Of a stretch of 64,000 nt of DNA, positions 6,170-46,480 are shown in pieces; positions within the stretch are counted from its first letter, which is position 1, and every line of letters starts with the position of its first letter. This DNA is from Octopus sinensis (lineage: Eukaryota). The notes under the pieces were generated by a model that was not told the DNA's origin, made no database searches, and saw nothing but the letters and a program-made list of their open reading frames with translations. The position numbers and the translations under genes are program-made. The stretch covers positions 30,380,001-30,444,000 of the forward strand of contig NC_043020.1 of assembly GCF_006345805.1 (NCBI RefSeq), written 5' to 3'.

Positions 6170-6183
6170 TAACATATATATAT

Positions 6184-6235
<52 letters not shown>

Positions 6236-6588
6236 ATATATATATATATATATATATATCCATATATATATATATATATATATATATCCATATATATATA
6301 TATATAATATATTCCATATATAATTATATTATATCCATAATATATATATATATATCCTATATATATATATATTTATCCATAATATATATACATATATATT
6401 ATATATATATATATAAATTAATATATATATATATATATCCATATATATATAAATATCTATATATATATATATATCCATATATATATATATACACACACAC
6501 TATATATAATACACATATATGTACACATATATATACACTATACATATATACACACATATATATATACACATACATATATATGTGTGTG

Positions 6589-6637
<49 letters not shown>

Positions 6638-6700
6638 CATGATGATATATACATACATACATACATATACACACACACACATAAATATATATATAAATCA
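6170..6700. repeat. (TA)n-rich compound microsatellite (one of many in the window)
   Basis: Seen directly in the sequence. Confidence 0.95.
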
Positions 6701-9191: not shown

Positions 9192-9310
9192 ATAGTGATA
9201 GTGATAGTGGTGGTGGTGGTGGTGATTGCAGCAGTAGTAATATGAGTAGTTTGCTAATTGGTGATTATGGAACTGTTGTCATTGTCAGTGTTGTTGTTGT
9301 TGTAGTTCGT

Positions 9311-10300: not shown

Positions 10301-11008
10301 GGTTGTGGTACAGCTACAAACAGTAGCAGCAACATCAGCAGCAGCAGCATTAGTATGTTGTTAATCTCCATCTGTGAACCAAAAACCCATCAATGGCTGT
10401 CGCTGCCATTTCTTATTTTTACCCTTTTATTCTCGGCAACTTTCCCCATCGAATCCCTCCATTGTTAAAAAGTGCAAGCATGGCCGTGCGGTAAAAGAAG
10501 CTCGTTTGGCAACCACGTGGTCTTCGCGTTCATCATCCCACTGAGTGGTCCCCCTTGGCAGTGTCTTATCTACTAAAACCCCAGGCCATCCAAGCCTTGC
10601 CATCATGTGTGTGTTGTTGTGTGTGTGTGGTGTGTATTGTGTGTGTGTGTGCCGGCGCGCTGTGGTGTCCCCTACTGTTTGACCACTGTTGTTTGTTTGT
10701 TTACATCCCCAAAACTTAGCTGTTTGGCCAACGAGATTGATAAAGTTACCAAACTTAAAGACAAAAACAAAGACGTATTGGGGTCGGATGTGTTTTTGCC
10801 AAAAAATCCCTTTCAAGGCTCTGCCCCAGCATGGCCACACTCCATATAAAAATAAGCAACCCCATCATTAAAATCTCAAAGCTTCAAGATAACCTGATTC
10901 ATTCAAAACCATTAAGAAGCTTTAGATTTGACAGAATAATCGAATTCTAAGGGTCAAGGAAAGGGATCGCAACATAAAACTATGAAGAAAGGCATTAATC
11001 TCTCTCTC

Positions 11009-12576: not shown

Positions 12577-12925
12577 CTTCTTCTTCTTCTTCTTCTTAGT
12601 TTTCCTCCTCCTCCGCCTCCTCTTCCTTCTTCTCCTCCTCCTCCTTCTCCTTCTCCCTCTTCTTCTTCCTCTTTTTCTTCTTATTCTTCTTCTTCTCCCT
12701 CTTCTTCTTCTTCTTCTTTTCCTTCTCCCTCTTCTTCTTCTTCTTCTTCTTCTTCTCCCTCTTCTTCTTCTTCTTCTTCTTCTCCCTCTTCTTCTTCTTC
12801 TTCTTCTTCTCTTCCCCTCTTCTTCTTCTTCTTTTCCTTCTCCCTCTTCTTCTTCTTCTTCTTCTTCTTCTCCCTCTTCTTCTTCTTCTTCTTCTTCTTC
12901 TTCTTCTTCTTCTTCTTCTCCTCCT
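12577..12925 (+). repeat. (CTT/CCT)n polypyrimidine tract
   Basis: Seen directly in the sequence; source of the poly-E/R and poly-S/F ORFs. Confidence 0.95.
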
Positions 12926-14629: not shown

Positions 14630-15200
14630 GCGGTGAGCTGGCAGAACCGTCAGCACGCCAGGCGAAATGCTTAGCGGTATTTCGTCTGCGTTACGTTGTG
14701 AGTTCAAATTCCGCCGAGGTCGGCTTTGCCTTTCATCCTTTCGGGGTCGATAAATTAAGTACCAGTTACGCACTGGGGTCGATGTAATCGACTTAATACC
14801 TATGTCTGTCCTTGTTTGTCCCCTCTATGTTTAGCCCTTTGTGGGTAATAAAGAAATAGGTATTTCGTCTGCCGCTACGTTCTGCGTTCAAATCCCGCCG
14901 AGGTCGACTTTGCTTTTCATTCTTTCGGGGTCGATTAAATAAATACCAGTTACGCACTGGGGTCGATGTAATCGACTTAATCCCTTTGTCTGTCCTTGTT
15001 TGTCCCTTCTGTGTGTAGCCCTTTGTGGGCAGTAAAGAAATAAGTATTTCGTCTGTTTTTGCGTTCTGAGTTCAAATTCTGCCGAGGTCGACTTTGCCTT
15101 TCATCCTTTCGAGGTCGATAAATTAAGTACCAGTTACGTACTAGGGTCGATCTAATCGACTGGTCCCCTTCCCAAAAATTTCAGGCCTTGTGCCTCGAGC
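14630..15200 (+). mobile_element. Head-to-tail trimer of the same SINE body (period about 183 bp)
   Basis: One full head is followed by two more GTATTTCGTCTG...GTTCAAAT..GCCGAGGTCG units starting near 14861 and 15044. Confidence 0.8.
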
Positions 15201-17672: not shown

Positions 17673-17974
17673 GCCCCTACAAGCTCCATACCTATCCATC
17701 TATTGCTACCCAAGCCTTAAGCTCAGCCCTTGTGTTGCGTTCTGTCCCCAAAGGCACAGCACCTACCAACAGGCCCCTACAAGCTCCATACCTATCGATC
17801 TATTGCTACCCAAGCCTTAAGCTCAGCCCTTGTGTTGCGTTCTGTCCCCAAAGGCACAGCACCTACCAACAGGCCCCTACAAGCTCCATACCTATCGATC
17901 TATTGCTACCCAAGCCTTAAGCTCAGCCCTTGTGTTGCGTTCTGTCCCCAAAGGCACAGCACCTACCAACAGGC
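17673..17974 (+). repeat. 100-bp tandem repeat, 3 near-identical copies
   Basis: GCCCCTACAAGCTCCATACC... recurs at 17673, 17773 and 17873. Confidence 0.95.
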
Positions 17975-22063: not shown

Positions 22064-23491
22064 TCAAAAGATATTTTCCGTATCCAACGCCCTCAACAAC
22101 TCTGTGCCATTAAGCAGACGATCGCCCGACCAGACTGGAGCATTCACTTCACAGTCAGTCTGCGTGAGGCGTGGGAGCCACTTGGAGGCTGCAGCCAAGT
22201 CTGTGGTGAATGTATACGGCCTCATTAAATTCTGGTGTTTAGGAATTTTGGCTCTGAATTTCAGATTGTTGTTCTGCATCGCAGAAACGTCTGCTGGTGA
22301 CATAGGAAGAGATTCAGTGGCCATGCTGTTGCTGCCATTCCTTTGCAGGGATAGTTTATCGCCATTGGAAACCAGAAGATGATCGTCATTATCATTGTAC
22401 TCAAAGTGGTCGCCTGTTTTTGCGTCACGAGGGGAGTCAGTGGCACAGCTATTGACGGAGAATGTTCTTTTAGCAACAACTTGCCAAACATTCTCCTCCT
22501 CATTGCTGTCATTAGTAGTAGTAGTAGTGTTAGTAGTAGTAGTAGTAGTGGTGGTCGGTGATGGTGGTGGTGTGCCTTCATGTGAATTTGAAACCCTATT
22601 CAGCTGTCCAGCAGGAATGAGATCAACCCCGAACAGTGTTCGGATATCAAAGGATGAACTTGATGACCTGGCATCAGGCAAGGCATTAGAAAGGCCAGTC
22701 GTGTTGTTGACTGCGCTGGTGCCCTCAGCTAAATTTGAACCCTTGGTCATCGTGTTTGACAGTGCCTGATCGTTTTGTCCTCCAGGGAGGTGATCCACAC
22801 CAAACAGTGCTCGGCAGTCATCAAAGAGAAATGATGACATACGACGAGTACTACTACTACTGCTACTATTACTACTACTACTGGTGGCAGCGACCCTGGT
22901 GGGATTCTCAACAGAATGAGATACATCAAAGCTGGGGTTCCCTTTTGCTTGGGGAAGCCTCTCACCATACAGGGCTTGGATGTCATTGGAGGAGTCTGAT
23001 TGTAGAGAATTAGGCAAGAGGCAGCCCCCGACCGTGGGGATAAGAGTGCTCTTAACTGGATTTGAAACTCTGGTGGCAGCATTCAGTTCTCTCTGATCCA
23101 GCTGACCAACTCCAACAAGGTCTTCACCAAACAGCGCTCGCTTATCGTAGGGTGGGCTCGGACTCCCTTGTACCATGGGAGAAGTAATGTTGGTTGTGGT
23201 GCCCTTCATAGAATTTGAAACTCTGATGTTGTTGTTGCTGCACGAACTGGTGGTAATGACAGAACTGGGACCAGTTAATGTAGGGGACGTGACTGTTGTG
23301 TTGAGGGCCCACCACCATGCCCAATCCTGCTCTTCAGGTTGATTGGTTGACATGGAAGAACCATTGTTGTTGCCATGGGGATTCGCTGCTGTGATGGCCG
23401 TGTTGACACTGATTGGGTTCTGGGTGGTTTGTCTTCTGCCTGTGAAAAACGAGTTGTCCAATTTGGGGAGGGATTCTGCTGGAGTTTGTGT
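22064..23491 (-). CDS. HIF1A: HIF-alpha terminal exon with C-TAD (1428 nt, 475 codons plus stop)
   Basis: Acceptor ttctctcttctttctcttctaacag|ACA CAA; ends KWLPRLTQTDCEVNAPVWSGDRLLNGTELLRALDTENIF*, containing the CEVNAP FIH asparagine-hydroxylation motif. Confidence 0.93.
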   Translation of the reverse strand, partial: TQTPAESLPKLDNSFFTGRRQTTQNPISVNTAITAANPHGNNNGSSMSTNQPEEQDWAWWWALNTTVTSPTLTGPSSVITTSSCSNNNIRVSNSMKGTTTNITSPMVQGSPSPPYDKRALFGEDLVGVGQLDQRELNAATRVSNPVKSTLIPTVGGCLLPNSLQSDSSNDIQALYGERLPQAKGNPSFDVSHSVENPTRVAATSSSSNSSSSSSTRRMSSFLFDDCRALFGVDHLPGGQNDQALSNTMTKGSNLAEGTSAVNNTTGLSNALPDARSSSSSFDIRTLFGVDLIPAGQLNRVSNSHEGTPPPSPTTTTTTTTNTTTTTNDSNEEENVWQVVAKRTFSVNSCATDSPRDAKTGDHFEYNDNDDHLLVSNGDKLSLQRNGSNSMATESLPMSPADVSAMQNNNLKFRAKIPKHQNLMRPYTFTTDLAAASKWLPRLTQTDCEVNAPVWSGDRLLNGTELLRALDTENIF

Positions 23492-24626
23492 CTGTTAGAA
23501 GAGAAAGAAGAGAGAATTACATAACAGAGATACATAAACACATATCACACAGACAGAGAGGGTGTTTGGGTTAAGTTTGACGATTATTGGTGAAGAGTCA
23601 AAGGTGTTGGAGAGCATATATATAGATGGAAGGATGGATGGATATGACAGGCTTCTTATAGTTTCCCTCTACCAAATCCACTTATAAAGTCACAAGGCTT
23701 TGGTTAGCCTGAGGTAGAAGAACTTGCCCAAGGTACCATGCAGTGGGACTGAACCCAGAACCGTGTGGTTGGAAAGCAAGCTTCATACTGCACAGCCAAG
23801 CCTGTATCTGTCTCATCTAACACCAACCGTTGGGCTGGATTCATTGTAACATGACATCAGTACGACTGAGATTGTCTCCTCAACTCAATATTGTCTCTAC
23901 TCATCCATGAAACACTTTACGGGATGCAGTCAATGCTTTTTATACTTGGTGGTACAGAGAAGAGAGAATGATTCTTCATGATCAAAAACGAAGGGGAGAT
24001 GGAGAGAGAGAGAGCCAACCCCCATCCTCATTGATATCCAGCACTGTACCCTTGTGTAACAATGTGTGTAGGTCAGCAAGTGGACCCACCCAACATCGAG
24101 ACAGTCAGGTTGTTGTTGCTGGAAAACTAATTTGCAATCAGTGTGGAATGACATTAAATGAAAATGATAGTTTCCAATGCTTGCAAGGGTCAAACGGAAT
24201 TTGGTGACCCGATGACCTTTCTGTTGTCAACCCTCACCTGTTCCTGAGCAAAGTAATACTCTCCCCCGAAGCAAGACGGGTTTTCCTGGAAGGTCAGAAA
24301 CAGACATCACCATTTGAATGTCAATGCGGCTTCTATACAACAGTTGTGCAACGTCAAGACAAAGAGACAACACCACACACACGTACACACAAGCATGCAC
24401 ATACGGACGCATTCACAAACGGACTTGCATGAAAGCATGTTAATGTGCAACGGTGTTCAATGGACGACTTACCGGCAGATAAGGTATTCCCATATGTTGG
24501 TTGACAAAGTAACCATTGTTACGGTCTTCTCCACTGACCAGAAGGTTCCGCAAAACACTGTCCTTGTTGTTGTTGTTGGATCCTGCAATTATTGTTGAAT
24601 AAAGGATTAAACAAAACACACACATT

Positions 24627-24687
<61 letters not shown>

Positions 24688-26013
24688 GTTATAATTTTAA
24701 AAAATGATGTTAAGCAAGAAACTCTTCGTCCAAAATCAGAGACATTTTCAAGAGTGTTGATCATCATCATCATCCTCATCATCGTTTAACGTCCGCTTTC
24801 CATGCTGGTATGGGTTGGACGGTTAGACTGGGGTCCGGGAAGCCAGGAAACTGCACCAGGCTCCAGTCTGATCTGGCATCTACAGCTGGATGCTCTTCCT
24901 AATGCCAACCACCCTTAGAGTGTAGTGGGTGCTTTTTATGTGCCACTGGCACAGGAGCCAATCAGACAGGCCTGGCATTGATCCCGTTTGGATGGTACAT
25001 TTTATACAGAAAGTTATTACATCAGAGTTGCTTGCAAGTGGCAGCCTTTTTCTCTGACAAAATACTTTGATATAAAGACACATACTCACCATATTCACTG
25101 ATCAGTTGTCGTGTCTGTGCTGTATTCCAACTAAATCCTTGCTGGACAGTACCACCGCCACCATCACCTCTTCCTTGAAATTGGGTGTCTTCTGGCATGA
25201 TTATCGACTCGAGTCTGCGGACTTTCCCTGGGGTTGGACCTTTAAGTTTTGTAGTGACTGGTTGGATTGGTAGCTCCTTGCCAATCTGCAGAAGAGTTTG
25301 ATTAGGGTTTGGTATCAGCACTTGGGGACTTGCTGTCTCTAGTAATTGTGAAATTTCTTTTTCTGACAGTGAAATCCCTGGGGTCCCCTCAAAAGCGGAA
25401 ATGTATTTCTGTAATTTTTCTGGTGGCAATTTAGAGGTGGGTGGTGACAAATTTGGAGCTATAGGGGGTTCCGTTAGTGACCCTTCCTTGTTGAGAGCAA
25501 ATATTTGCTGAAGCTCCTCTGCTTTTCGAGTTGGGTTGTAGTTCATATTCGACTTCATTGTCCTCAGCTGCTCTGTGAGTAACACTTGTTGCTGTAAGGG
25601 TGGTTCTGGTGAACTCCCATTGAGGACAACCTTGCTCAAGAGCCTTTCACCACCTCCTTGGAGGTTAGGGTTAGGGTTAACTAACATCGCTGGTGACGGG
25701 GATTTTTGTAGTGATGGGCTGTTGTTGAAAGGAGGTGTTTGCATAAACCCTTTGTCCAGACAGGCTTCTGTTTTGTTTGCAAGACTCAAGATGTCTTTAG
25801 AATACAGCCTGAAGAAGAAGAAGAGTGTAAGACAAGAGTAAAAATGATGACAAAACCAAGAGAATTTATTTTCACGGGGGTCTTGGACCCTTTACGTGCG
25901 AGTATGGTAGTAAAAATATCACAGTCCCATATAAGTGAGCAATGTCACAAGAGATGTGAGAAAGGTCATACAACACTTGTGTCATAGAGAGAGTCAGCAA
26001 CTGGTCTACATTG

Positions 26014-26083
<70 letters not shown>

Positions 26084-27134
26084 CCTTAGTTTCCAATGCT
26101 CCTCGTGGTCTCTGTATTTGGAGACTGAGAACCAGCTGACATTCAGAAAATGTCTCAATCATCTCAGATGACTGCTCAAGAAACATCACGTGATGCTCAT
26201 CTCACAATACCTCAATAACATATTCACCTAACCCATGCTAGCATGGAAAAACAGATGTAAAACAAATTCATACATATAACTGCATTGCATAATGTACATA
26301 TTAATAAATGAAAGTTATTAAAAGGCCATGATTAAATAAATCTATCTTCACCTCTCATAGCTTCAGACTTTATACTTTATATCCTCGTCACTGAATATTT
26401 TATCAGATTTTCTGGATTTTCAGTTACCTCGACACTCAACATTATACTTCTTTGTAATCATTTATGCAGACAGATAACCGAATCTGTAGGAGGAGCTTAC
26501 TGTGATAGCTGCAAGATTCTCTGAATCTACCTCACACACACACAGCAGTGGTTGTGTTGCTAACAACCGATGCGTGAACAACTGAACAAAACTCAAATAT
26601 CTGCTGACACTTCAAAGAAAAACCAGCTTCACCTTTCAGATTCTTTGTTCAGCTTCAGGTTAACCCTGAACAGGCAGGCCTAGGATCAAAGGTGCTCCAG
26701 TTGTGACTGTCCAGTCTAGATTGACACTTGTCCTTCTTTACTTAAGAAAGGGTGGATGAAGTTCGAAGCACATGTCTGCTATTTCTAGTGGATCAAGTGA
26801 TTCTCCAGACGCTCTCTCATTAACTTGCCCCCCCCCTCCACTGACTTTTACTAATCACAAATGGAAATAACAATTAGAAAGAGAGAAAGAAAGAGATGTG
26901 AAAATAAAACCAGAGTTAAGAGAAGATTCCTCCCCACACAAAGACTTACATATCTCCAATGTCTGGGCTCAGCAACAAACTCCCTTCATTTGGTGAGGAC
27001 AGGGTGGCCTGAAGAATGTCGTATTCCGTCTCTTCTATGCTGAAATCCTTTTGTTATCATCAAGTATTTGAAAGAAATAGGAATAGTAAAGAATTTAAAT
27101 GTTGTATATATACATTATGTAGCGGCGCCGCCGC

Positions 27135-27168
<34 letters not shown>

Positions 27169-27558
27169 ATCATCATCATCATCATATATATATATATAAA
27201 TAAAGTTTTAAAAAAGCAGATAAACAAAAGGAATGACATAACAGTCTTATCTTTACAGCTGTTTCGGATGAACCATGACTAGGGTCATAGCCACGTATAT
27301 TATGTAATAAAGTTCATAATTTCATGGTGTCGACCTGTTCACTGACAAAATTCCGTGCTGCACGGAATTTTGTCAGTGAACAAGTCGCGGTTTCAAAACG
27401 ATGAAAATAATTTGACAAATTAAATTTAAATGTTGAAGTGAATCGAACGGTTTTTGTGTGTTTCTTAAATGGCTTATAAACACCTTTCACGCTGCAATTG
27501 TTTTCGTTCCAGCACACGATCTCAGATCAAATTACTTGCTATGCAAGTACATCTCCGT

Positions 27559-27593
<35 letters not shown>

Positions 27594-28208
27594 CATATAA
27601 ACCTATGTAATTTGCACACCTGTGTAATTTACGCAGGTGATTTTCAGGATAAAAATTGTTAAAAAAAGCTTTTACTCATGTAAAATTTGTACCCAAAAGT
27701 TTTCAGAATTGCTGATAAAGCCAGGGGAAAAATGTTTTCAATTTCGTTGTATTTAGCATAATTTCACTTACTTATGATTAGATTTTATTAAATTTTCATT
27801 AAATAAAAATAATTTCTGTTTAACAGGTTTCACATTAAAAGTTACTGAATTAGAAAGTGTTTTGTGTTGCCTTCCATATTAAATAAAGTCTGCTTCGCTC
27901 CTTTGGTATAGCCTCCCCCTCCCTCAATGATGTCAGTCCGCTTTACTCACTCGCCATACCCTCCCCTTCCCTCAACGTCAGCGTTCCAATAAGAATGAGT
28001 AAACAAGAAATCTGACGCTGCTCGGTGTCTGTGTGTGTATGAGACTGTGTGTGTGTGTACATGTAAGTGTATGAGACTGTGTGTTTAAGTGTGTGTGTGT
28101 GTGTAAGTGTATGAGACTGTGTGTGTGTGTGTGTCTCCACATAACCGTGAGATTAACAGGAAATAACCGAAGTATTATTATACAAATTGTAAGCAGACAA
28201 TGGCTGTA

Positions 28209-28273
<65 letters not shown>

Positions 28274-31200
28274 GTATATATATATATGTCTATCATGTGT
28301 GTGTGTGTATATATTTCTATATACACATGTATACATGTATATGTATATATGTCTATCATGTGTGTGTGTGTGTGCTTCCCTTTCTCTCTCACAATCAGTC
28401 ACAGAGACATGCATACACAGGAAAAGTTGTTCAGGATTATCAACAAAAAACGAAGCTGATAAATACACACAGGTGTTGCTAATTAAATTTAATTACCAAT
28501 AAACAACACCTTCGATGACACTTTACTCAATCGAGTAAAGGCAGGACTGCAATCAGAAAACCACTACTTTTAAAAACAAATGTCACAAAGCATTTAGAGT
28601 AAAAACCTACAGAATTGGTCCCTCGAGCAGTGGAAGAATGTTATTTTCTTGGACGAATCATCCTTTACCTTATTTCCAACCACCTGCCTTCTTCCAACTG
28701 TTAAACATGGAGAAGGATCTGTGATGATCTGGTGTGTGTGGGGGGGGGCTATATCTTGGAAATCCGCTGGCCCAATGGTTTCCCTTCAAGGCAGAATTAA
28801 TAGTCAAGACTATTTAAGCATTTTATCTGATCAAATGCATCTTATGGTTGCTGAACTGTTTCCGGAGGGGAATGCAATCTTTCAGGATGATAGTGCACCA
28901 ATTCACACAGCTAAAATTGTTACTGAATGGCACAAGGAACATTCTAGTGAAGTTGAACATCTACTCTGGCCAGCACAGTCCCCAGATCTCAATATTATTT
29001 GAACATTTATGGTGCATTTTAGAAAAACAAGTAAGGAGATGATATCCTCCACCATCTTCGCTACAAGAACTGGAGACTGTTTTAGCTGAAGAATGGACAA
29101 GAATTCCTTTGGAAACAATTCAAACTTTGTACGACTTCATACTTTGTAGAATTCAAGCTGTAATTACTGCCAAAGGCGGTTCTACCCTATATTAAAATAA
29201 ATTTGTTTGAAATTTTAAGGTATATGAAAATATAAGCATACATAAATGGGCCAAAACCCAACCGTTTGGCTCAGAATTTCAATCTACAAATGAAATATAT
29301 ACATACTTGTAACTGAGGAGACAAATCTGGAACTGGTAAACACTTTGGTTTGTTATCACATATCTCTGTCATACTGACTTCGTTCATATATGCCTCGTCA
29401 GCATCAAGTGTTGGGACCTTGAATGCTGTTTCTGTGGAACGGAAAGAAAAGGCAGATGAGAGATAGGAAAATTGTGATGGAGAAGCAATGAGTGTGTGTG
29501 TGTGTGTGTGTGCAATAGATATAACCCCACCACCAGGTCAACCAAAGCCTCATGAATTAATATGATAGATAGAAACTGAAAGGAGCTCATTGTGTGTGTG
29601 TGTGTTTTTACATTTGCAGTTTATGAAAATCCCCAGCTTCAAGAAGTGTTCTTCCATTTCTGACACCAAATTGTCTGCTCACTCTTCACACTTTCAGAAA
29701 TGTGGAAATAAGAGACCCTTCCCCCCTCTGCTTACATACATACATATACAGATATATATATAAATATGTACTTACCAAAACTGGAAGGTACTGACAGATC
29801 TATACACACATCACCTGCGCTTGGTGCCCGAAATGTCAAATCGTCAAATGCATTCATACCTGGAATATATACAGTGAGTTAGACGAAAAGTGTTGGTGGC
29901 TGTAGATATCATCATCATCATCATCATATTTATTTCGCTTAGGCATAGTGAGACTAACAGCCTGGTGTTAGAACGTTACAACTCAATATACATAGGCTCC
30001 AGAATAAAGCATTAGTCAGGTGCAGAGAGGGTAAAATGAAATAAAACGACTGGCAAAAGAATAAGGAATTATGTAATGAATGGCATTGGCTTACAGCTGT
30101 TTCTGCTGTGAGATGCAGTGAACTCAGAGCAGAGTGCACTGCATAATTTCTTGTTCCCTTGTCATTTATTTAATCAGGTGTATGAGTATGGGTGTGTAAA
30201 TCCAATGAAGAAAATAAAGAACAACACAGGAGAAGCAAGGTTTAAAGGAAAGAGAAAATTGCTTAACGTTTTGGATGTTGACCCTTCATCAGAAGTTAGA
30301 GAGGAGCAGGGGGGGGTGAGAAAGAGAAATATCAAATTGAGAAAGAAAAGAAGATAAGGAAGCCACAGGGGAAAAATGACTGACACACACACATATACAC
30401 ACTGTCTGATCAATAAGTATCCAGACTGTTGCCATAGTAACGAAGTTAAAGCTCGCAGAGTGGAGCCACTTGGCATAGATTGACCTTCAACTCTGCAGTG
30501 CATGCGCACTAAGCTTTAACTTTCAGACTCACTTCCGCTGTTTACAGCAGTGCTTGGAAGGAAGGTGTGTAGTGTGTGATCGTTACATTGACCATCACAG
30601 AGAAAACTGAGCAGAGAATCTCTTGTGCAACTGGAACTTGGGAGTCTTTTCGGTCAGCTGAAAGCAGTTTTGGCACAAACTTGGCGGACACATGTCTCAT
30701 AACCAAATCTTCAGTGATAATGGACTGCACTGAACCGTAACTAATCTGCACATCCTCTCATAACTCATGGATGGTGATTCCATGATTTCCCCTCACATCT
30801 GCAATGTTTTTCTCAGTGATTGTAGAGCAACGTGAAATGATTTTGCTCAAGAATACAAGACACCACATGGCCTGGGAATTGAAACCACCACTCCCCTCAT
30901 CGTGAGACTAACATCCTAACCACCAGGCCAGGCACCCTTATACTATAATAATAACAATAAATGATACTCACAGTCAGCTGTCGATGAAGTGTCCCCTTGT
31001 TCCTCAAGGAGCAGCGTTGTGGTTGGAGAAACCAAGTCATCAATCAACATATTGGTAACATTGGTGCTGCCGGGTCCACCACTGCCATCAGAACCCGTGA
31101 CTGCAGGGTCATGAGGAGAAGTGGTGTTGTTACCATTGTTGTTCGCTTCACTGAGGAGCGATGTTGGTATTGTTGCTATGTTTGTGCTATTTTTGTTGAT

Positions 31201-34200
31201 GTAGAGGTTTTCATCCATGTCCTTTGTCCGGGGTGCAAAGATCTTCTCCGTGTTCAGCAGAGGACCAGGACTGCTGTAGTGGTTACACTGGCTCTGCCCT
31301 GGCTGGCAGCTCTGGCCGAGGTTATTGAGTCTTCTGTTGTCACAGGTCTCATTGCTAGCAATACCAACCGATTGCGGAGAACGATGCTGCGACTCCTCAG
31401 TCGATGCCACGACGACAGTGTCACAAACATCACCATCATCATCGCGAATAAGAGCAGGTGGGGCAGCAGTGAAGTCAGGAGATGCTAATGCGTACCCGAG
31501 TGAATGAGGGCTGAACACTTGGCTCTCTTGAGATGCTGTCTTCATAAACTCAACTGTCTTTGTTGTCATTCGCTTTTTCTTCTTGGAGATTCCTGGCAAC
31601 AGTGCTGACCCGCTCATCCTTGTCGGATCATTGTCCTTCAGATCATCTTTCATCATCTTCTTTATCTTCCTCTCTCTATTAGACTCTGCCTTTTGCTTGG
31701 AGGCTGACATTTCCAATATCGTCATTTCACTGTCTTCCTCATAGTTGCCATTTACTTGATTTCTATAATCTCTGATGCCAATGTCAAACCTCTTATCTCT
31801 ATCATCCACCTTCATTTCAATTGTATTCTCGTCCTCTTCATTCTCTTCTACTCTGCCATCAATCATCTTTACAGGAACTGTTCTCTCTCCGTTTTCGGAA
31901 ACCTCTATACTGCTGTAATTTGTTCCAGTATCAAAATCATTGGCCATTATGACCTCTGCCATCACAACTTCATTGCTATACCCCCTCTCCATCCTCCGGC
32001 TCTCGTCCATTTCTCTTTCACCTGGCTCTTTCACTTGACTATCATCAATAATGCAATCATCATCTGTCTCATCGACATCCATTTCGGCTCCGATGCCATT
32101 GTCAAAGACATTCACCACAACACCGTCTTCATGTTTCGCTCCTCTTTTCCTCCACTTCAACTTGCTGCTGTCTTCTTCATCCTTGTATTCATCAGAGACA
32201 GCACCATCTTTACAGCTTATGATGCCATTTTCTTCCTTCACCAATGCCTTCTCACCTCTGTAACCACTGCTCTCCATATTACTGTTGTTGTGACTCCCTC
32301 TCTCCTCCTCTTCATTGTTTGTTGCCTTTCTCTTGAACTTTTTTGTGTTTCTTTGCTCCGCTTGTTGCTCTCTGTCTTCCTTCTTACCACCAAAACCATG
32401 TCCAATGCTGTGTTTGTCCTTGTGGCTATAAAACCTGCTGTCACATGACTTTGGACATGCCTCACGCTGACTGACCAGGTCACCAAGCTTGGAGAGGACA
32501 AACTTGTGAGAAGAGGACGAGCTTGATGAAAGGGTTGGAGTCAATTTAGATATTTTGCAGGTTAACGATGACAAGGGTCTACCGTCCTTGCCCCTCTTGG
32601 TATCGTCATGACCACCACCATTGAGGTTATCCACATTTTCTTTCTTACACTTCACCAACAACTGGCTTTCAGCTTCTGAAGTTGCGACCTTTGGAGCAAC
32701 AAGAAGAGAGTACGACTGAGTACGATCCATGGATATTTTCTTTGTTGCAGAAGTCGATGATAATGATGTGACACTGTGGTCCTTTGTATGTTTGCTGTTG
32801 TTTGTGTGGAGGAAATCTTCCATTTGTGGATGTGAAGAAGACTGTTTTGCTGATGGGGTTTGTGGCTGGGGTTGAGGAGACAATGGCTGCTGTACTAGGG
32901 AGAGGATCTCATGCTGGTTTTCAATCTCACTGAAAAAGAGAAACCGAAAGAAAAAGAAATTCAACAATTACAGTTTGATGAAGAAAACAGCAAAATGTGA
33001 AAATATTTTCAAAATTCCATAAAAAAATATAAAAAAGACTAAGAAAGATGAGAAGAAAGACAAAAAAAAACAGAATGGGGAATGAAGAAAACAGAGAGAA
33101 AAAAGTGAAAGAGAGATGAAGAGATTTGAAGAAAGTCAGTGAAAAAGAAAGAAAAGAGAAGCAGAGGAAAAGGAAACAAGAAAGTGACAGACAGACAGAC
33201 ACAAGTGGAGACATAAGGAGAGAAGAAGGAAAAGGGGACAAGAGAAGGTAACTGAAACGGAGAAATACCATACCTAAGGACACTGTGGACGCAGACAACA
33301 TAGAGTGGTTTCTGTGTCCGGTTGTCATAAATGACAGTTGCTTGAGTGGTCAGCCAGACATGACCACCCTGCTTGGCCAGAAATCTGTATTGTCCAGTGG
33401 TGATCTGTCCTTTTGTCATTACTGAAATGGAAACAAAATACTGAATGTATAGATACACATATACCCCCACCCTGTAATGTGTACCCCCAGCATTACATCT
33501 TCACATCTACCTCTCACTTCTCTCTCTCCAACCATTTTAACTCCTCTACTGCAAGACACCTCTTCACGCAATACACATAAGATACATGGCTACATTGTTG
33601 TTATCATCAATGTTAAAGATATGCTGTGTGATTGGTCATTCTGGAATTTGCTGGAAAATTATATGGAGACAAAATGGATGAGTTCCTTTGGAGCGTTGGG
33701 CCTCACAGAGGCAAAGTGGGTGAGTTCCTTTTGAGCGTTGGGCCTCACAGAGGCAAAGTGGGTGAGTTCCTTTAGAGCGTTGGGTCTCACAGAGGCAAAG
33801 TGGGTGAGTTCCTCTCGAGCGTTGGGCCTCACAGAGGCAAAGTGGGTGAGTTCCTTTTGAGCGTTGGGCAATGACCAAGACCTTTGGCATTATGTCGTGC
33901 TTGAGAAGAACCATTAAACCAAGAAAAATTGCAGTTGTATTAGATACTGGTCTCATGCAAATTGGCACCCATGCCACATAAACACACTCCGGTGTCACGC
34001 AAAACCACCCATTACACTCTCAGAGTGGTTGGCGTTAGGAAGGGCATCCAGCTATAGAAAACCATGCCAAATCGGACTGGAGTCTGGTGCAGCCTTCCAG
34101 CGTGCCAGCCCAGTCAAACCATCCAACCCATGCCAGAATGGACAAAGAACATTAAATGATGATGATGATGATGATTATATATATATATATATATATATAA

Positions 34201-37200
34201 AACAACAATAAAATCAAACTAGTGCATTTAATACATGTGTTTCAGATCATTATGCAAGAGAAAAAAAACAGAATTCATCTCTTACGTAACATCTTCAGTC
34301 AAAACATTTCAAAATATATTTCATTATATTCTATACAACTCCAAGCTAACCAGTCCTTACACCATCGACACAGATCAAGGATTTCTTGCAGTTTATTGAA
34401 CTGGATCTGAGTTGAAAAATTCTGGTAAAGTGCATCACTTCTAAGCATAATACAATATATACACCCTCATATACACACACATTATACTCACTGAAATCAT
34501 CTAAACTGGTACTTACACTCCTTAAACGCTTGGCCAACCATCTCAGCATCCAATCCATGATAATATTCATATATGGAATGTCCAATGATGTCTTCAGAAG
34601 AATAGCCAACCAATTCTTTGATTCTGTGAGCACAAAGAGAGAGAAAGAGAAGATATAGTGTACATACACACACACATATACGTATATATATATTGTTAAT
34701 GTTTGTTTTTATATTTAGTTATAATAAAAAGCAATTTTACTTTAATATGATGGGTTATTCTAGACTTTCGTAGAGGACAAATTTATTATTCTTAAAAATG
34801 AGAATGTTGTTGTTAGTAACTGCGAAGTTTTGGCCAGTTAAGCCATCATCAGACTTCAAAGTCACTGTCAATAATATTCCCGTTTAATAATAAATAAATA
34901 AATACACACACACACATATATAAATGCACACACACACACACACGTATGCATATAGTAATTAGTTATACTGATTTTCTGCCACAAATTCCTTTTGGAAAAG
35001 TGGATCTCGAAGCACATAAAGCTATTATTAATAGCATGTAAATACTGGGCTTAAAAAACCCTTTGAATGGAAGAAATCAAAGGCTAGTAAACAGAGGCAG
35101 GCTTCGACTTTTTGTAGCAACAGGGTTTTTAGCCCAAATATTTCCATGTTATTATTTATAGCCTTATGTGTTTCAAGATCTACTGTTCCAAAGAAGAATA
35201 ATTTCACATTCTTTCAGAAGTTTAAAAATTCTTATGATCTCAACATAGGTACAGGTATGTAAGAAGTTTGCTTCCCAACCACATGGTTCTGGGTTCAGTC
35301 CCATTGCATGGCACCAGTCTTCTACTATAACCTAGGGTCAACCAAAGCCTTGTGAGTGGATTTGGTAAACGGAAACTGAAAGAAGCCCATCATATATATT
35401 ATTTGTGTGTGTGTGTGTGTTTGTCCCTCACCACTGCTTGACAACCAGTGTTGGTATGTTTACATCCCTGTAATTAAGCGGTTTGGCAAAAGAGACCAAT
35501 AGAATAAGTACAAGGCTTTTAAAAAAAAATGAGTAACAAGGTTGATTTGTTTAATTAAACATCTATGAGGCAGTGCTCCAACATGGCCGTAGTCTAACAA
35601 ATGAAACAAGTAAAAATGAAAAGCTATATAAATATATAAAAATATATACTCACTTTTCATCCCATATAGTGAACCTCATATCCATGCTGTGTTGGCTGAG
35701 GAAAGTCTGGGAACCAAGTGGTACCTCAATATTAGAAGGATGAGGAATCGGTTCACCGAAAGCCACAAAGTAAGCAGCACCTGGCCTTGGCTTTCCGCTC
35801 TCGGCACTGCTGTTATCAGAGCTGTTGCCACTGACGTGCCTGCTACGGTTTGCAGGTGTGGCACACGGGGACAATGTTTTAGCAGTGTCATCACTGGAGT
35901 CACCCGATTTAGCCTCGTCATCATTATCCTGTTTCTGCTTCAGGTTGTCACGGAAACGACACACATGATGACTTCCAGTATCCCCACCCTCGCCATCTGC
36001 ATGTTCAGCCATCTTATTACTATCATCATCATTTTTATTATTATTATTATTCTCATTAGTTGGAGGATGTTGATGAAGCGGAAGCTTAAGGAGATGCGAA
36101 AGACTGTCGCCTGCAGCCTGGGCTTCACCTGTAAAGCTTCCATTCTCTGCTTCTTCTTTGATTGTTACAGGTGACGTTGCTAATGACGATGACTGTTGAT
36201 GATGTAATGAAGATGAGGTGTGGTGAAGGTGTTGGTGGGGGCTGTGTTTGTTTGGATGATGTACATGATGAAGGGAACTTCCTCTTCCTCCTCTGCTGCT
36301 GTCACCTTTGTCAGCAACGAGTTTCTCCGCCTTTATCTCCTGTCCACTGTACTCCTCGTCATCATTTGCTTCGGACTTAAATTCCTTCTTCTCGATGACA
36401 ACAACATCATCATCATCATCATCCTCACCATCACTATCATTGTCAGCATCAGTGCTGGCTGCTACATGCTTCGCTAGTTTCTTCTGGAGAGAGGCTTTGT
36501 CTAAAGGTGAAGAGGATGAACATGGTAAACACAAAGTGGATGATGATGTAGAGGAGGAGGATGATGATGCAGGAGACGTAGCTGATGAGGATTGGAAGAT
36601 GTTGGTATCTCCAGTAGGGCACAAAAGTTGACCACTGAACTTGATGACCTGCAAAAACAAGCAACAAAAATGAGAGAACAATAACATGTAGGTACAAAAG
36701 CATCCATACAGAAGTATGGATGCTTATGTCCAGACTCTCACAGATATTGCAGAGATAATTTGCAACAATTAAAGATAATTCAATTTACAAAAGGGTTAGA
36801 ATTAATTCTTATACTCAGGACAGAGAGAGGTTACTAAAGTTGCATGAAATTGCATGCCAAACGTAGTTAGAAACAAAGCATGATTTTTAGCGCATCTTCT
36901 GGTGCAATTGCATGAAATTTATTTGGCTTTTCAGTATCACAAGTACTGTATAAATATCACAGACAGACAGACAGACATTTGTTGAATGAATAACTTTTAA
37001 CAATTAATGATGATTCTCTTCACAGAAGGGTTAAATGTGATCTTTATGCCGCTCTTGGGACACAGAGTTTCATGTGGTTGCATTGTCGGATGTGCTCAGG
37101 AAGAGAATGAATTTTGGCTGCATCAACATTCATCAGAGACAAGACTAATCAACACACAACGGCCTAAGCAGCCTTTAATCAAGACCACTTAAGTATGGCC

Positions 37201-38479
37201 CTTGACTGTCCTGTGTCCTGTACAAATAAGATTTTCCTGTTAACTGCAATAAATTGCTTTTAATTCTACAATACACAAAATATTTTAACAATATTTTAAT
37301 ATAATTCCTAATAATATTTAATGACAAAAATATAATAGGATCTTTTAAACATCAAATGGTTGTGAGAGACCACCGAAGTAAAATAGAAATCTGAGAGGTC
37401 CAGAGGGAAGAAATGGTTGAGAACCACTGGTTTAGAATAAAGTCACCCTGCCCCCTCATACACACACCCAGAGTTCATAATAGTCTTGCAAAAGCTGAAT
37501 GGCAACCTCCTCACGAGGGCTGGTGGTGTGCAAAAAGAAAAAAAAGCACCCACCAGGCAGACACTGGAGTGCTTGACAAATAATCTGGACAAATCCCTTA
37601 CCATGAAACTCTAAACCTTTGAGTATCTCCTGTAGTATTACTCTTCATTAATCAGGTGATGACACCAACACCACCACTGCTGCTACCACCACCAACGCCA
37701 CCACCACCACCACCACCACCACCACCACCACCACCACTTTAACAGTTTTTAGTGATGTACATTCTGTTGCAAACATCTGGGATAGGTTCCTCATCTGAGA
37801 ATAACTCCCTCCAACAGCCCTAGAAAGGCCCTTACAGCTTTGACTAAGCCATAAAAAAAACCCTTCCAATATGCAGTGCTGCAGAGTGGGGGAGGGATTG
37901 GTGTAAGGAAGAGGAGTAGTGACACACACACACACACACACAATGACAGCAGCAAAAACTACAAAGGGACCCTACCTTATACAAAGGGACCCTACCTTAT
38001 ACAAAGGGACCCTACCTTATATGATGCAGATTTCAGGTTGATGTTGCGCCCCTTTGCTGTCAATGTAGACTTCACACGAAGTGAGAACACTTGCCGCGGG
38101 GAAGGCCAAGTGTCAACTCCAGCTGTACGATGGGCCCGGGATGGACCCAGCTCACTTCGTAGTTGTTCGTGGTCACATGGGTGAATGTACTCGTAGATAT
38201 TTTGTCCAAGAAGGTCAATCTGTGAAGCATAAAGGTCAGATTTAGAAAGTCATTGAGATATATCGAGAGAGAACTAGATACTGTATACACACCCACACAC
38301 ATAAGCGTAGTTGTCACGAACTCTCATAAAACGTGGAATCGTATTACATTGAAAGCAAACTTCTGAACCACACAGCTATGTATACATTCAAATATATAGG
38401 TATACGTACTATATATATATCTATCTATATATATATATATATATAGGTATATATATATATATATTATATATATATATAT

Positions 38480-38560
<81 letters not shown>

Positions 38561-39921
38561 AAAAGAGAGAGAGAGAGAGAGAAGCCCTGAATGTCAGCCA
38601 TTAACTCAACCAGATTATCATTGGTGTGTTTCTAAAGAGCAAGGAAATGAGGAAGTGGGGGGCGTGTGAAAGCGCTCACCTGCTGGATACCTAAGTATTT
38701 GCCAACATGCTCGGACACATCAACAATTTCCCCATCACGTGACAGGATAATGACAAACCCATCCAGGGCCCTCGCATACAGCTGGGCCACAACAGCCTCG
38801 TCCAGGCTGTCATCATCCACGCTGCTGCTGCTCGGACTGTGATTTTCTGTTCTGGTTGGCTGATCATTGTCTTCAGCTGTTCTTGGGCTGTTCTTTGGTG
38901 AAAATGACCGACTCTCGCTGATGGCCTCTGCCTCAGTCTGGTCATCATTGGTGATGCTTCGGTTGTTATCAAAGTTGAAGTTCTCTGCTTGGTCAGTCTG
39001 CCGTGTGTCTTGCACTAAACAACCAAAAGGGACAAAAAAGATTAAGTAGAATTAAAACAGATTTCATATGTTGGATATTATCCAAAATAATCTTAAAAAT
39101 AATTAATAATCAAAGTCTTAAAGTGGTGTGAAAGTGTTGCTGTCTTGTAGCAGACGCTCTATAGCTGGGTGCCTTTCCTGTTGCCCACCCTCACCTCTTT
39201 CCAAGCAGGGTAATATTTTCCCAAGGCCAGAAATGCTTTTCACAGAACACTTGAAACAAACATCTCTTTTATGATGATGATGTGCATTTACAACCATCAC
39301 ATGATGTCAAGACAAGGGAACACACACACACACACACACACATGATGGGCTTCTTTCAGTTTCCATCTATCAATCTCCTCACAACGTTTTGGTCGACCTG
39401 AGGCACTACAGAAAACTACTTGCTCAAGGTGTCATGGTGTCAATTTGAGAAACTGCTGCAGTGTTCTTAGCTAATTAAGAATAGCTAATTAAGAATAGCT
39501 AATTAAAACTAGCTTACTTTATGCCTTTGTTTATAGCATCACCACTTGACATTTTTAGAGAGTTATGTTCTGTTGCAAACATTGGTGCCAAGTCTCTGGT
39601 CTGAGGGTGACTTCCATTCTGCCTCTTAAATGCCATCAAATACTGTATCCCTCTTTTTTTCCCCCCCACCCCACATACACACAATGATGATGAACCCTAA
39701 TACAAACACAAAAACACAAAACAAACTTATTACCGCTCAGTCGTATTTCGTGTTGCTTCATTAAGCACAGTGTCAGCCTCATGATGGACGCCTTGTCCAG
39801 CTGACGTGTCTTCCCTTTGGCCAAAGGAAGTGTGTCGGCAAGCTCTGTGAATATGTGGGTCTCCTGGTTACGCCGTTGTCGAGCTGCATCACGGGACTTT
39901 TCTCTCCGTTTCTCTGAATTC
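22064..39921 (-). CDS. HIF1A: Hypoxia-inducible factor alpha (bHLH-PAS-ODD-CTAD), 13 coding exons reconstructed; first coding exon not securely identified
   Basis: Exon translations give the HIF-type bHLH (NSEKRREKSRDAARQRR...LDKASIMRL), PAS-A (ALDGFVIILSRDG; YIHPCDH; KGRNINLKSASYK), PAS-B ([48 protein letters not shown]), NODD-like LTFRAPSAGD and C-TAD LPRLTQTDCEVNAP...LLRALD. All introns are GT-AG with matching phases. The symbol denotes the HIF-alpha family; orthology versus paralogy is not established. Confidence 0.95.
24473..24582 (-). CDS. HIF1A: HIF-alpha exon with SVLRNLLVSGED motif (110 nt, phase 1 to 0)
   Basis: Acceptor ttgcag|GA TCC; SNNNNKDSVLRNLLVSGEDRNNGYFVNQHMGIPYLP; donor CCG|gtaagt. 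Needed to bridge phase 1 to the phase-0 terminal exon. Confidence 0.8.
25090..25808 (-). CDS. HIF1A: HIF-alpha exon, Pro/Gln/Ser-rich (719 nt, phase 2 to 1)
   Basis: Acceptor cttcttcttcag|G CTG; 239 open codons (ORF 25022-25789); donor G|gtgagt. Confidence 0.85.
26950..27047 (-). CDS. HIF1A: HIF-alpha exon at the expected C-terminal ODD position (98 nt, phase 0 to 2)
   Basis: DFSIEETEYDILQATLSSPNEGSLLLSPDIGD; donor AT|gtaagt joins in frame to G CTG TAT of the next exon. The acceptor (aacaaaag|) is weak, and a competing tttcag 8 nt downstream would shift the frame. Confidence 0.7.
28520..29222 (+). mobile_element. Tc1-family transposase fragment (catalytic domain), intronic
   Basis: WKNVIF-DESSF, TVKHGEGSVMIW, FQDDSAPIHTA, WPAQSPDLNII-EHLW and TAKGGSTLY motifs, with frameshifts. 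Confidence 0.9.
29307..29431 (-). CDS. HIF1A: HIF-alpha exon (125 nt, phase 1 to 0)
   Basis: Strong acceptor ttttctttccgttccacag. The only open frame is the phase-matching one (TAFKVPTLDADEAYMNEVSMTEICDNKPKCLPVPDLSPQLQ); donor CAA|gtatgt. Confidence 0.8.
29776..29859 (-). CDS. HIF1A: HIF-alpha exon: N-terminal ODD-like motif (84 nt, phase 1 to 1)
   Basis: Acceptor attccag|GT ATG; MNAFDDLTFRAPSAGDVCIDLSVPSSF resembles the human Pro402 motif LTLLAPAAGDTIISL; donor G|gtaagt. Confidence 0.9.
30620..30830 (-). mobile_element. Mariner transposase fragment, intronic
   Basis: VQISYGSVQSIITEDLVMRHVSAKFVPKLL matches the mariner HTH region and the WVP-equivalent motif. Confidence 0.75.
30972..32929 (-). 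CDS. HIF1A: HIF-alpha exon: very long post-PAS exon (1958 nt, phase 2 to 1)
   Basis: Acceptor tttttcag|T GAG ATT GAA; starts EIENQHEILSLVQQ (typical post-PAC HIF sequence); 652 open codons including KIFAPRTKDMD; donor T|gtgagt. Confidence 0.88.
33274..33421 (-). CDS. HIF1A: HIF-alpha exon: PAS-B/PAC (148 nt, phase 1 to 2)
   Basis: Acceptor catttcag|TA [54 protein letters not shown]; donor AG|gtatgg. Confidence 0.96.
33677..33868 (+). repeat. 42-bp tandem repeat, about 4.5 copies
   Basis: GAGCGTTGGG recurs at 33691, 33733, 33775, 33817 and 33859. Confidence 0.92.
33680..34170 (+). mobile_element. Abundant LINE-3'-end-derived interspersed repeat with (GAT)n tail; related copies near 3617-3915(-), 24778-24990(-), 40330-40460(+), 43975-44320(-), 48228-48460(-) and 57590-57830(+)
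   Basis: Shared blocks such as GGAAGGGCATCCAGCT(G/A)TAGAAA and CCAACCCATGCCAG...TTAAA(T/C)GATGATGATG recur at these loci. The 5' part translates like a LINE ORF2 C-terminus (LGLTEA...LWHYVVLEK). Confidence 0.75.
34517..34623 (-). CDS. HIF1A: HIF-alpha exon: PAS-B (107 nt, phase 2 to 1)
   Basis: Acceptor ctcacag|A ATC AAA; IKELVGYSSEDIIGHSIYEYYHGLDAEMVGQAFKE; donor T|gtaagt. Confidence 0.95.
35654..36648 (-). CDS. HIF1A: HIF-alpha exon: end of PAS-A, long acidic/His/Ser-rich insertion, start of PAS-B (995 nt, phase 0 to 2)
   Basis: Acceptor ttgcag|GTC ATC AAG; VIKFSGQL...[39 protein letters not shown]; donor AA|gtgagt. Confidence 0.93.
37961..38020. repeat. 20-bp perfect tandem repeat x3 spanning an exon-intron junction
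   Basis: (ACAAAGGGACCCTACCTTAT)3. Confidence 0.95.
38016..38219 (-). CDS. HIF1A: HIF-alpha exon: PAS-A (204 nt, phase 0 to 0)
   Basis: Acceptor ttcacag|ATT GAC; encodes IDLLGQNIYEYIHPCDHEQLRSEL...FSLRVKSTLTAKGRNINLKSASYK; donor AAG|gtaggg. Absent from the supplied ORF track in this frame. Confidence 0.95.
38680..39014 (-). CDS. HIF1A: HIF-alpha exon: linker and start of PAS-A (335 nt, phase 1 to 0)
   Basis: Acceptor gtttag|TG CAA GAC; ends ...LYARALDGFVIILSRDGEIVDVSEHVGKYLGIQQ; donor CAG|gtgagc. Overlaps ORF 38632-39015. Confidence 0.94.
39734..39921 (-). CDS. HIF1A: HIF-alpha exon: bHLH domain (188 nt, phase 2 to 1)
   Basis: Acceptor ttgacag|G AAT TCA GAG AAA CGG; encodes NSEKRREKSRDAARQRRNQETHIFTELADTLPLAKGKTRQLDKASIMRLTLCLMKQHEIRLS; donor G|gtaata. 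Confidence 0.96.
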
Positions 39922-46132: not shown

Positions 46133-46149
46133 CAGATAGATAGATAGAT

Positions 46150-46182
<33 letters not shown>

Positions 46183-46184
46183 AG

Positions 46185-46226
<42 letters not shown>

Positions 46227-46248
46227 CGGATAGATAGATAGGTAGACT

Positions 46249-46310
<62 letters not shown>

Positions 46311-46327
46311 CGGATAGATAGATAGAC

Positions 46328-46362
<35 letters not shown>

Positions 46363-46372
46363 CAGATAGACG

Positions 46373-46443
<71 letters not shown>

Positions 46444-46480
46444 GGATAGATAGATAGGTAGATAGATAGACAGACAGACT
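46133..46480 (+). repeat. (GATA)n tetranucleotide array; a second array lies at about 45665-45852
   Basis: Seen directly in the sequence. Confidence 0.95.

Follow-up and report, generated by a model that had tools for sequence, protein, structure and literature searches.

The subject here is a 64,000-nucleotide stretch of the Octopus sinensis genome (RefSeq assembly GCF_006345805.1, contig NC_043020.1, forward-strand positions 30,380,001 to 30,444,000), hereafter the window, within which positions are counted from the first letter. Encoded on the minus strand of this window is what very probably is the single-copy octopod orthologue of HIF-alpha, that is, a gene for a real, translated protein of 2174 amino acids, one bearing exon-internal and probably disordered inserts that would have been gained along the octopod branch. 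HIF-alpha is among the best studied of transcription factors. It varies remarkably little in length, measuring about 700 to 860 amino acids over the molluscs and vertebrates sampled, a range from which the octopus protein departs. At 2174 residues it is 2.6 times the length of human HIF1A (826 amino acids), the same factor of growth that was proposed in an earlier note on this DNA, and about 2.7 times the median of the approximately 130 HIF-alphas retrieved. The longest of those from outside of octopuses is the 1738-residue Sima of a blowfly, with other retrieved molluscan HIF-alphas spanning 697 to 861 residues. The octopus protein (2174 to 2318 residues) is the longest HIF-alpha among those found.

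The gene model was built from stop-to-stop reading frames, the reading of splice sites, and translation of the joined exons, with exons 1, 9, 10, 11, and 13 located using the protein of Octopus bimaculoides as a guide. Thirteen exons, rebuilt base by base between 39921 and 22064, sum to 6499 nucleotides, which is identical to the sum of the earlier note, as are the lengths of its three long exons (995, 1958, and 1428 nucleotides). All introns are GT-AG, phases are consistent, and the sole stop codon is the terminal one. Exon 1 (60468 to 60493; 26 nucleotides, supplying MDKKAKPR plus two bases) is found outside of the range of that note, 20.5 kb upstream of exon 2, where a motif search using the O. 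bimaculoides N-terminus places its ATG at 60493 and its donor at GTACGT. Joined to exon 2 in phase 2, it gives MDKKAKPRRNSEKRREK, with the full coding sequence then consisting of 14 exons, 6525 nucleotides, and 2174 amino acids. This exact model is not present in a collection of 15 billion proteins. An open frame of 652 codons has, given the stop-codon frequency of the window (0.047), a probability of about 3e-14 per position and of about 4e-9 for the window as a whole, and while the longest open frame observed is 674 codons, that of 100 block shuffles of the window reaches only 425. The 652-codon frame thus is beyond what chance would supply.

That the protein is a HIF-alpha possessing the usual domain order, as the earlier note had it, is seen from its domains, from its relatives of known structure, and from its placement in a tree. 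Pfam finds, in order, bHLH_HIF1A (PF23171; E-value 5e-18, with 65.6 bits versus a cut-off of 27), PAS (1.4e-9), PAS_3 (1.5e-17), and HIF-1a_CTAD (PF08778; 8.2e-13, with 48.1 bits versus a cut-off of 25), and finds no match over long parts of exons 5, 8, and 12. The bHLH domain, for DNA binding and dimerization, occupies exon 2 (39734 to 39921; 188 nucleotides). The core of PAS-A, i.e., the Pfam PAS match, is found in exon 4 (38016 to 38219; 204 nucleotides), while PAS-B/PAC is spread over exon 6 (34517 to 34623; 107 nucleotides) as its first part and exon 7 (33274 to 33421; 148 nucleotides) as its second, with PAS_3 matched by these jointly. A PDB search using the N-terminal 699 residues scores HIF-1alpha best (9ofu, 4zpr; 5.5e-90), with HIF-2alpha at 5.6e-88, and other bHLH-PAS proteins at 6e-42 (NPAS3), 7e-26 (BMAL1), about 1e-23 to 1e-26 (BMAL1/CLOCK), and 1e-16 (AHR). 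The HIF-1alpha structures are aligned in three blocks (query residues 6-66, 144-260, and 527-682), exon 4 included. All of the top database matches are HIF-1alpha or Sima.

In a neighbor-joining tree (497 gap-free columns) the two octopus proteins are found inside of the molluscs, together with a 756-residue protein, P0013, while HIF-alphas of annelids, nemerteans, arthropods, and vertebrates branch outside. Bootstrap support for P0013 as the sister of the octopus proteins is 100%. It is the top match when inserts are removed from the query, and, because it has derived motifs in common with the octopus proteins, probably comes from a non-octopod cephalopod. At the C-terminus, the octopus CTAD (22177 to 22082), reading ...TQTDCEVNAPVWSGDRLLNGTELLRALD, aligns with vertebrate CEVNAP, keeping the context of the asparagine that is targeted by FIH. 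Judged by its sequence, the octopus protein is a true HIF-alpha.

The extra residues, about 1,350 to 1,400 of them, are located within exons 3, 5, 8, and 14, with exon 12 about the same length as the corresponding region elsewhere. The inserts, that is, would have arisen on the octopod branch, within five pre-existing exons, and at four places: the linker between bHLH and PAS-A, a surface loop of PAS-A, the stretch from PAS-B to the NODD motif, and the stretch between a motif found in exon 13 and the CTAD. Exon 3 (38680 to 39014; 335 nucleotides) carries the first of these, a lineage-specific linker (residues 73-139; 39012-38812) which precedes the start of PAS-A and by which the usual bHLH/PAS-A linker is lengthened by about 63 residues. 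The PDB alignment here skips query residues 67-143, and in O. bimaculoides 105 residues separate the bHLH from PAS-A, versus a median of 39. Exon 5 (35654 to 36648; 995 nucleotides) encodes a PAS-A strand, a loop insertion of about 265 residues (residues 263-526; 36615-35824), the final strands of PAS-A, and the beginning of PAS-B. Here the PDB alignment passes directly from query residue 260 to 527, over which the HIF-1alpha chain moves only from 211 to 214. Exon 8 (30972 to 32929; 1958 nucleotides) begins with the end of PAS-B, which is followed by an octopod-only region of about 545 residues (residues 691-1235; 32862-31228), a conserved pre-NODD motif, NTEKIFAPRTKDMDENLYI (31254-31198), and then about 60 residues more. 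Exon 14 (22064 to 23491; 1428 nucleotides including the stop) starts with an insert of about 425 residues (residues 1700-2125; 23491-22214) and ends with the CTAD.

Between these latter two are exon 9 (29776 to 29859; 84 nucleotides), with its NODD-like prolyl-hydroxylation motif, DDLTFRAPSAGDVCIDL, at 29845-29795; exon 10 (29307 to 29431; 125 nucleotides), which is a conserved acidic region; exon 11 (26950 to 27047; 98 nucleotides), which also is conserved; exon 12 (25090 to 25808; 719 nucleotides), which is P/L/Q-rich and found where other HIF-alphas have their CODD, though without the conserved CODD proline; and exon 13 (24473 to 24582; 110 nucleotides), with a conserved motif, KDSVLRNLLVSGEDRNNGY, that is common to P0013 and other molluscs. 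As measured between conserved anchors in about 110 to 125 proteins, the PAS-A loop is 305/332 residues long in octopus, the corresponding median and maximum of other species being 41 and 63, the distance from PAS-B to NODD is 670/690 versus 64 and 273, and that from NODD to CTAD is 815/909 versus 357 and 405.

This growth has left intact the exon-intron arrangement within which it occurred. Exons were mapped exactly, and placed on a joint protein alignment, for HIF1A of a bird (Ammospiza; locus L009) and HIF-alpha of an abalone (Haliotis cracherodii; locus L010). Octopus introns 1 through 7 are identical in alignment column and phase to those of both, with the bird possessing one additional PAS-A intron, and the PAS-B exons are 107 and 148 nucleotides in length in all three. 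The intron which follows the NODD exon is common to octopus and bird, and the C-terminal series of octopus intron phases (1,1,0,2,1,0) is that of the abalone minus one intron. What the earlier note had stated of vertebrate intron positions around PAS-B thus is correct, and so too, as introns 1 through 7 are shared and the additional residues are within exons, is its proposal of exon-internal expansion: going by these comparisons, the ancestral exon skeleton is kept.

The best database relative of the octopus protein is the above-noted protein of O. bimaculoides (XP_014772617.1; UniProt A0A0L8HG05), 2318 residues in length and bearing the name "uncharacterized protein LOC106870896". Colinearity of its locus (L001) with the window extends from before exon 1 to 10 kb beyond the stop codon, introns and flanks included. 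The same 14 exons are present, the nine short ones being equal in length while among the five long ones the differences are 9, 81, 60, 168, and 114 nucleotides. The two proteins are 87% identical. Exon indels are multiples of three in every instance (47 of 47, including 8/8 in exon 5, 18/18 in exon 8, and 12/12 in exon 14), versus 23 of 95 among short intron indels. The orthologue of O. maya has been measured by quantitative PCR (PMC11255218), and the published HIF1A primers map to exon 7 (33413-33302), with an amplicon of 112 bp as published.

Ratios of nonsynonymous to synonymous change (dN/dS), estimated pairwise by the method of Nei and Gojobori between the window and O. bimaculoides, are 0.39 for all inserts (confidence interval, CI, 0.32-0.51), 0.12 for all conserved modules (CI 0.06-0.18), and 0 to 0.08 for structured exons. 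Among the last of these, exon 2 is 100% identical in amino acids, with a dN/dS of 0, and exons 4, 10, and 11 are at 0.04, 0.07, and 0.06; exon 9 too is 100% identical. Individual inserts other than the exon 3 linker range from 0.30 to 0.45, among them 0.32 for that of exon 5, 0.35 for exon 8, 0.37 for exon 12, and 0.45 for the insert of exon 14. Overall, constraint on inserts is about three-fold relaxed relative to domains. In a third, more distant octopod, represented by genomic Logan contigs (L007, L002), exon 8 is open over 649 codons with both splice sites kept, and there dN/dS is 0.36 at a dS of 0.39, with all 15 indels in frame. Stops within the long exons of related species, which the earlier note had named as evidence that would speak against it, are found neither in the exons of O. 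bimaculoides nor in exon 8 of the third octopod. Moderate purifying selection on the inserts, weaker than that on the domains, is supported by these comparisons, which agrees with the suggestion of selection on the new regions made in that note, the exon 3 insert being an exception.

An alternative, which I view as possible though doubtful, is that the inserts are tolerated filler, that is, functionless products of slippage and drift which remain in frame solely because an essential CTAD is encoded downstream. Consistent with filler, many of the 50 protein-level indels separating the two octopuses adjoin runs of S, D, N, G, or H, a pattern suggesting that replication slippage has contributed to length change. 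So too is the composition of the inserts, which is polar (S, D, E, K, T, and N are abundant) with few hydrophobic residues, albeit not of pure low complexity given entropies of 3.5 to 4.1 bits. To this can be added the three-fold weaker constraint, including the ratio seen with exon 3, the lack of a predicted fold, and the lack of homologues elsewhere. A HMMER search of 1.84 billion representative proteins using exon 8, that is, matches two octopod proteins only, so that this insert would be neither a captured domain nor a transposon protein, and the inserts appear to be restricted to octopods, with no homologue detectable outside of them. Frame-keeping does not, however, account for a deficit of amino-acid changes, such as is seen in the four insert segments, out of five, whose dN/dS is clearly less than 1, nor does filler readily explain islands of 20 to 50 amino acids which are nearly invariant in three octopods, nor a short motif that is conserved in four-fold repetition.

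Of those islands, the 31-residue MDRTQSYSLLVAPKVATSEAESQLLVKCKKE in the exon 8 insert (32638 to 32730, minus strand) is nearly invariant over three octopods whose overall identity is 75 to 83%. It contains SLLVAP, which resembles the LxxLAP hydroxylation motif without matching it and which could be a new regulatory site. Other nearly invariant islands in the three-species alignment of exon 8 are a HKFVLSKLGDLVSQREA block, the basic stretches KKFKRK and SKKKKR, a VIMANDFD..IEVSENG block, and a SPHSLGY..ASPDF block. The repeated motif, D-x-[RQ]-[AT]-L-[FY]-G-x-[DR]-[LH]...G[QN] as found by regular-expression scan, occurs four times in exon 14 (22598 to 23149, minus strand; copies at 23149-23096, 22987-22934, 22822-22769, and 22651-22598) with a spacing of about 55 residues. 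All four copies are conserved in O. bimaculoides, and in the third octopod copy four is conserved while copy three has diverged. Self-BLAST of exon 14 detects no extended internal duplication, with repetition limited to this short motif. The motif loosely recalls the vertebrate 'SLFQAVGIG' and the molluscan 'NPGLFGRTESVF', a likeness for which homology is unproven. No other difference in length between the two octopus orthologues is as large as that made by a 43-residue block in exon 12 of O. bimaculoides (L001 31558-32444), reading NNSCNRNNSPGLSL…QQAPIPS, which corresponds to a 135-nucleotide gap and is absent from the window.

A less probable alternative still is that the long exons hide internal introns (exitrons), such that the main mRNA encodes a HIF-alpha of ordinary size, with the giant reading frame belonging to a minor or nuclear-retained isoform. 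The sole full-length relative indeed is a predicted model, and the nearest relative from outside of octopuses, P0013, is known from a 756-residue cDNA, or at least from contigs which look cDNA-like since they are intronless in three sequencing runs. Sequence that always is spliced out, however, would not keep its frame over 47 of 47 and 15 of 15 indels, nor a dN/dS of about 0.35 to 0.4, nor uninterrupted reading frames of about 650 codons in three species, and for these reasons at least one translated isoform must, on this comparative evidence, include the long-exon regions. The canonical splice sites at exon ends, in addition, are conserved.

The motifs by which HIF-alpha senses oxygen also have changed, though seemingly not in step with the growth. 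The NODD-type motif of exon 9 aligns with LTHLAPTSGD and LTLLAPAAGD of molluscs and vertebrates, reading LTFRAPSAGD in octopus and LTNRAPSAGD in P0013 versus LxxLAPxxGD in other species. As RAP is the normal form within the molluscan CODD (MRAPYIPM), the LxxRAP site may be a hydroxylation substrate. Abalone, oyster, Solemya, a chiton, and vertebrates all carry the CODD motif, M[RL]APYIPM..DF, to which neither octopus nor P0013 has a counterpart in the alignment. A regular-expression scan of the whole minus strand for LAPY and AP[YF][IV] returned nothing relevant, and phmmer comparison of the ODD region with PDB peptides returned no match at E-values up to 10. The one candidate, PPIAPNL in exon 12, does not qualify even as a degenerate CODD, its proline being a serine (IAS) in O. 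bimaculoides. Because the 756-residue P0013 likewise is without a CODD, loss of this motif seems, going by an alignment in which the sequences are divergent, to predate the expansion. The state common to octopus proteins and P0013, with LxxRAP at NODD and no CODD, suggests that oxygen-dependent degradation has changed across the cephalopods.

Very unlikely, lastly, is that this is a divergent paralogue in a new role, with hypoxia responses served by a conventional HIF-alpha located elsewhere in the octopus genome, as, notwithstanding the long octopus branch in the tree and the missing CODD, no protein search returned a second octopus HIF-alpha, P0013 shares the LxxRAPSAGDVCI motif, the absence of CODD, and the N-terminus such that these derived features seem to predate the expansion, the intron positions all are ancestral, and the O. 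maya HIF1A primers target this same gene. Those searches, it should be said, failed to return the known O. bimaculoides protein twice out of three times, with exon 14 on its own returning only a 275-residue fragment, probably since candidates were crowded out by low-complexity words, and the insert-free core also missing the 2318-residue orthologue. As this occurred despite long identical stretches, negatives from these protein searches are weak evidence, and their lack of a second hit is inconclusive.

A number of points nevertheless weigh against viewing this gene as a single-copy, translated HIF-alpha whose octopod inserts are disordered and constrained. The lack of a second octopus HIF-alpha is a result of protein searches, with whole octopus genomes not covered. 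The full-length product is predicted from genomic sequence, and its O. bimaculoides counterpart likewise is a predicted model. The exon 3 linker, with a dN/dS of 0.79 and a CI that includes 1, is compatible with neutrality, and all of the dN/dS values are approximate, being pairwise estimates from alignments rich in low complexity. In-frame indels, furthermore, could reflect nothing more than a requirement that the CTAD, which is encoded downstream, stay in frame. AlphaFold, given exon 8 alone, returned a single charged helix and a mean predicted local distance difference test (pLDDT) score of 38, but did so from an alignment of three sequences, so that the low pLDDT is weak support for disorder, a property also favored by the polar composition of the inserts. 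Lastly, with LxxLAP altered to LxxRAP and no CODD found, oxygen-dependent degradation may differ from that of other HIF-alphas.

Taking the octopus gene, as preferred here, to be the octopod HIF-alpha, its protein would have kept the bHLH, PAS-A, PAS-B/PAC, one NODD-type motif (LTFRAPSAGD), and a CTAD with its FIH-target asparagine. Most likely, going by these conserved motifs, it dimerizes with ARNT and binds hypoxia-response elements, with prolyl hydroxylation presumably leading to VHL-mediated degradation and asparaginyl hydroxylation presumably blocking the coactivator. Given their conserved islands and the four-fold repeated short motif, the inserts would be better described as linkers along which short motifs for docking or regulation are scattered than as inert filler. 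A bolder version of this, which is rather unlikely, is that the inserts represent functional innovation, i.e., that following cephalopod CODD loss about 1,400 new regulatory residues came to rewire the degradation, localization, or coactivator coupling of HIF-alpha. Under this still speculative version, the elements involved would include the LLVAP island, basic blocks resembling nuclear-localization signals, and the four-fold D-x-R-A-L-F-G motif found before the CTAD, while the PAS-A loop of about 265 residues might modulate dimerization with ARNT.

What results is a clean natural example of the recent growth of probably disordered sequence in one lineage, sequence which already is under purifying selection, and an indication that the PAS-A loop can accept an insert of about 265 residues while fold-forming residues stay conserved. 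Of more practical importance, the octopus "HIF1A" of quantitative PCR studies encodes a protein that is very unlike the textbook form, with one recognizable prolyl-hydroxylation site rather than two, and this bears on the reading of cephalopod hypoxia and temperature-stress data. No description of a giant cephalopod HIF-alpha was found in the literature, nor was a paper found which cites the O. bimaculoides protein accessions. The orthologous O. bimaculoides model nonetheless is already public, and has been for some time, without the HIF-alpha name, and the finding opens no long-standing question.

Other features of the window are mostly repeats. Intron 1 (39922-60467) is 20,546 nucleotides in length versus 10,592 in O. 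bimaculoides, with which it is alignable in blocks of 77 to 90% identity. Within it are a tandem array at 56421-57618 (77-nucleotide unit, 15.6 copies, 98% matches, or alternatively a 459-nucleotide period) and, at 50352-50765 on the minus strand, a 137-residue open reading frame (…WKKIWPECVQDYKGFSPEDIHHEAV…) that resembles a fragment of a transposon-derived protein, without Pfam match at E-values up to 0.01. A Tc1/mariner-type remnant is found in intron 10 (28649-29002, plus strand), where a fragment of an open frame matches DDE_3 (PF13358; E-value 1.3e-7). In intron 8 an open frame, '…VMRHVSAKFVPKLLSADRKDSQV…' (30545-30757, minus strand), resembles the N-terminal part of a mariner-type transposase, likewise without Pfam match at E-values up to 0.01. 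Intron 6 has a 42-nucleotide tandem repeat (33666-33869; 4.9 copies, 93% matches). At 9309-10309 are 43 copies of a G-rich, 24-nucleotide tandem repeat, GTGGTGGAGGCAGTGGAGGTGGTG, to which the local GC content of 0.51, the GC skew of 0.69, and long spurious open frames on both strands can be attributed. Simple repeats are found as (AT)n at 6174-6695, (CTT)n at 12577-12919, and (AGAT)n at 46134-46478, with further repeats at 14676-15161 (184 nucleotides) and 17673-17974 (100 nucleotides).

Among known systems, the O. bimaculoides orthologue is closest, having the same four insert sites and the same motifs as the window protein while being 144 residues longer via 50 in-frame indels. P0013, which is encoded on intronless contigs of 2.5 to 3.0 kb (Logan SRR29271470, SRR8281686, and SRR8281664), shares with the octopus proteins MD..KPRRNSEKRREK, EI[EQ]N..EILS.VQQ, NTEKIFAP[RK]TKDM, LT.RAPSAGDVCI, K[DE]SVLRNLLV.GED, the CTAD, and the absence of CODD. 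It differs in having about 36 residues versus about 550 in octopus exon 8, about 25 versus about 425 in exon 14, and no PAS-A loop insert. Other molluscan HIF-alphas, e.g., of Magallana gigas (697 residues) and Haliotis (713 to 751 residues), have the same domain order and a core which is 45 to 50% identical to that of octopus, with intron positions over the bHLH-PAS half that, in Haliotis, are the same. They differ from octopus in possessing two hydroxylation motifs (LAP..GD and MRAPYIPM), 15 exons, and lengths of 700 to 860 residues. The oyster HIF-alpha is without the FIH-target asparagine (PMC6488082), which octopus keeps.

Insects supply the other instance of enlargement. Their Sima or HIF-alpha proteins (1738 residues for isoform X2 of Calliphora vicina; 1208 to 1376 for Apis) are enlarged by non-domain sequence following PAS-B, with PAS-B-to-NODD spacing of up to 273, and yet still are 440 to 1,000 residues shorter than that of octopus. 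Drosophila Sima is about 1500 residues long. In insects the PAS-A loop is not enlarged (maximum of 63 outside of octopus), and the insect and octopus expansions, being without sequence similarity, appear to be independent. Vertebrate HIF-1alpha (human, 826 residues; 4ZPR, 9OFU), lastly, aligns with octopus over bHLH, PAS-A, and PAS-B at the E-value of 5.5e-90 given above, but does so with both NODD and CODD present, with a PAS-A loop of about 20 residues, and within a protein that the octopus version exceeds in length by 2.6-fold.

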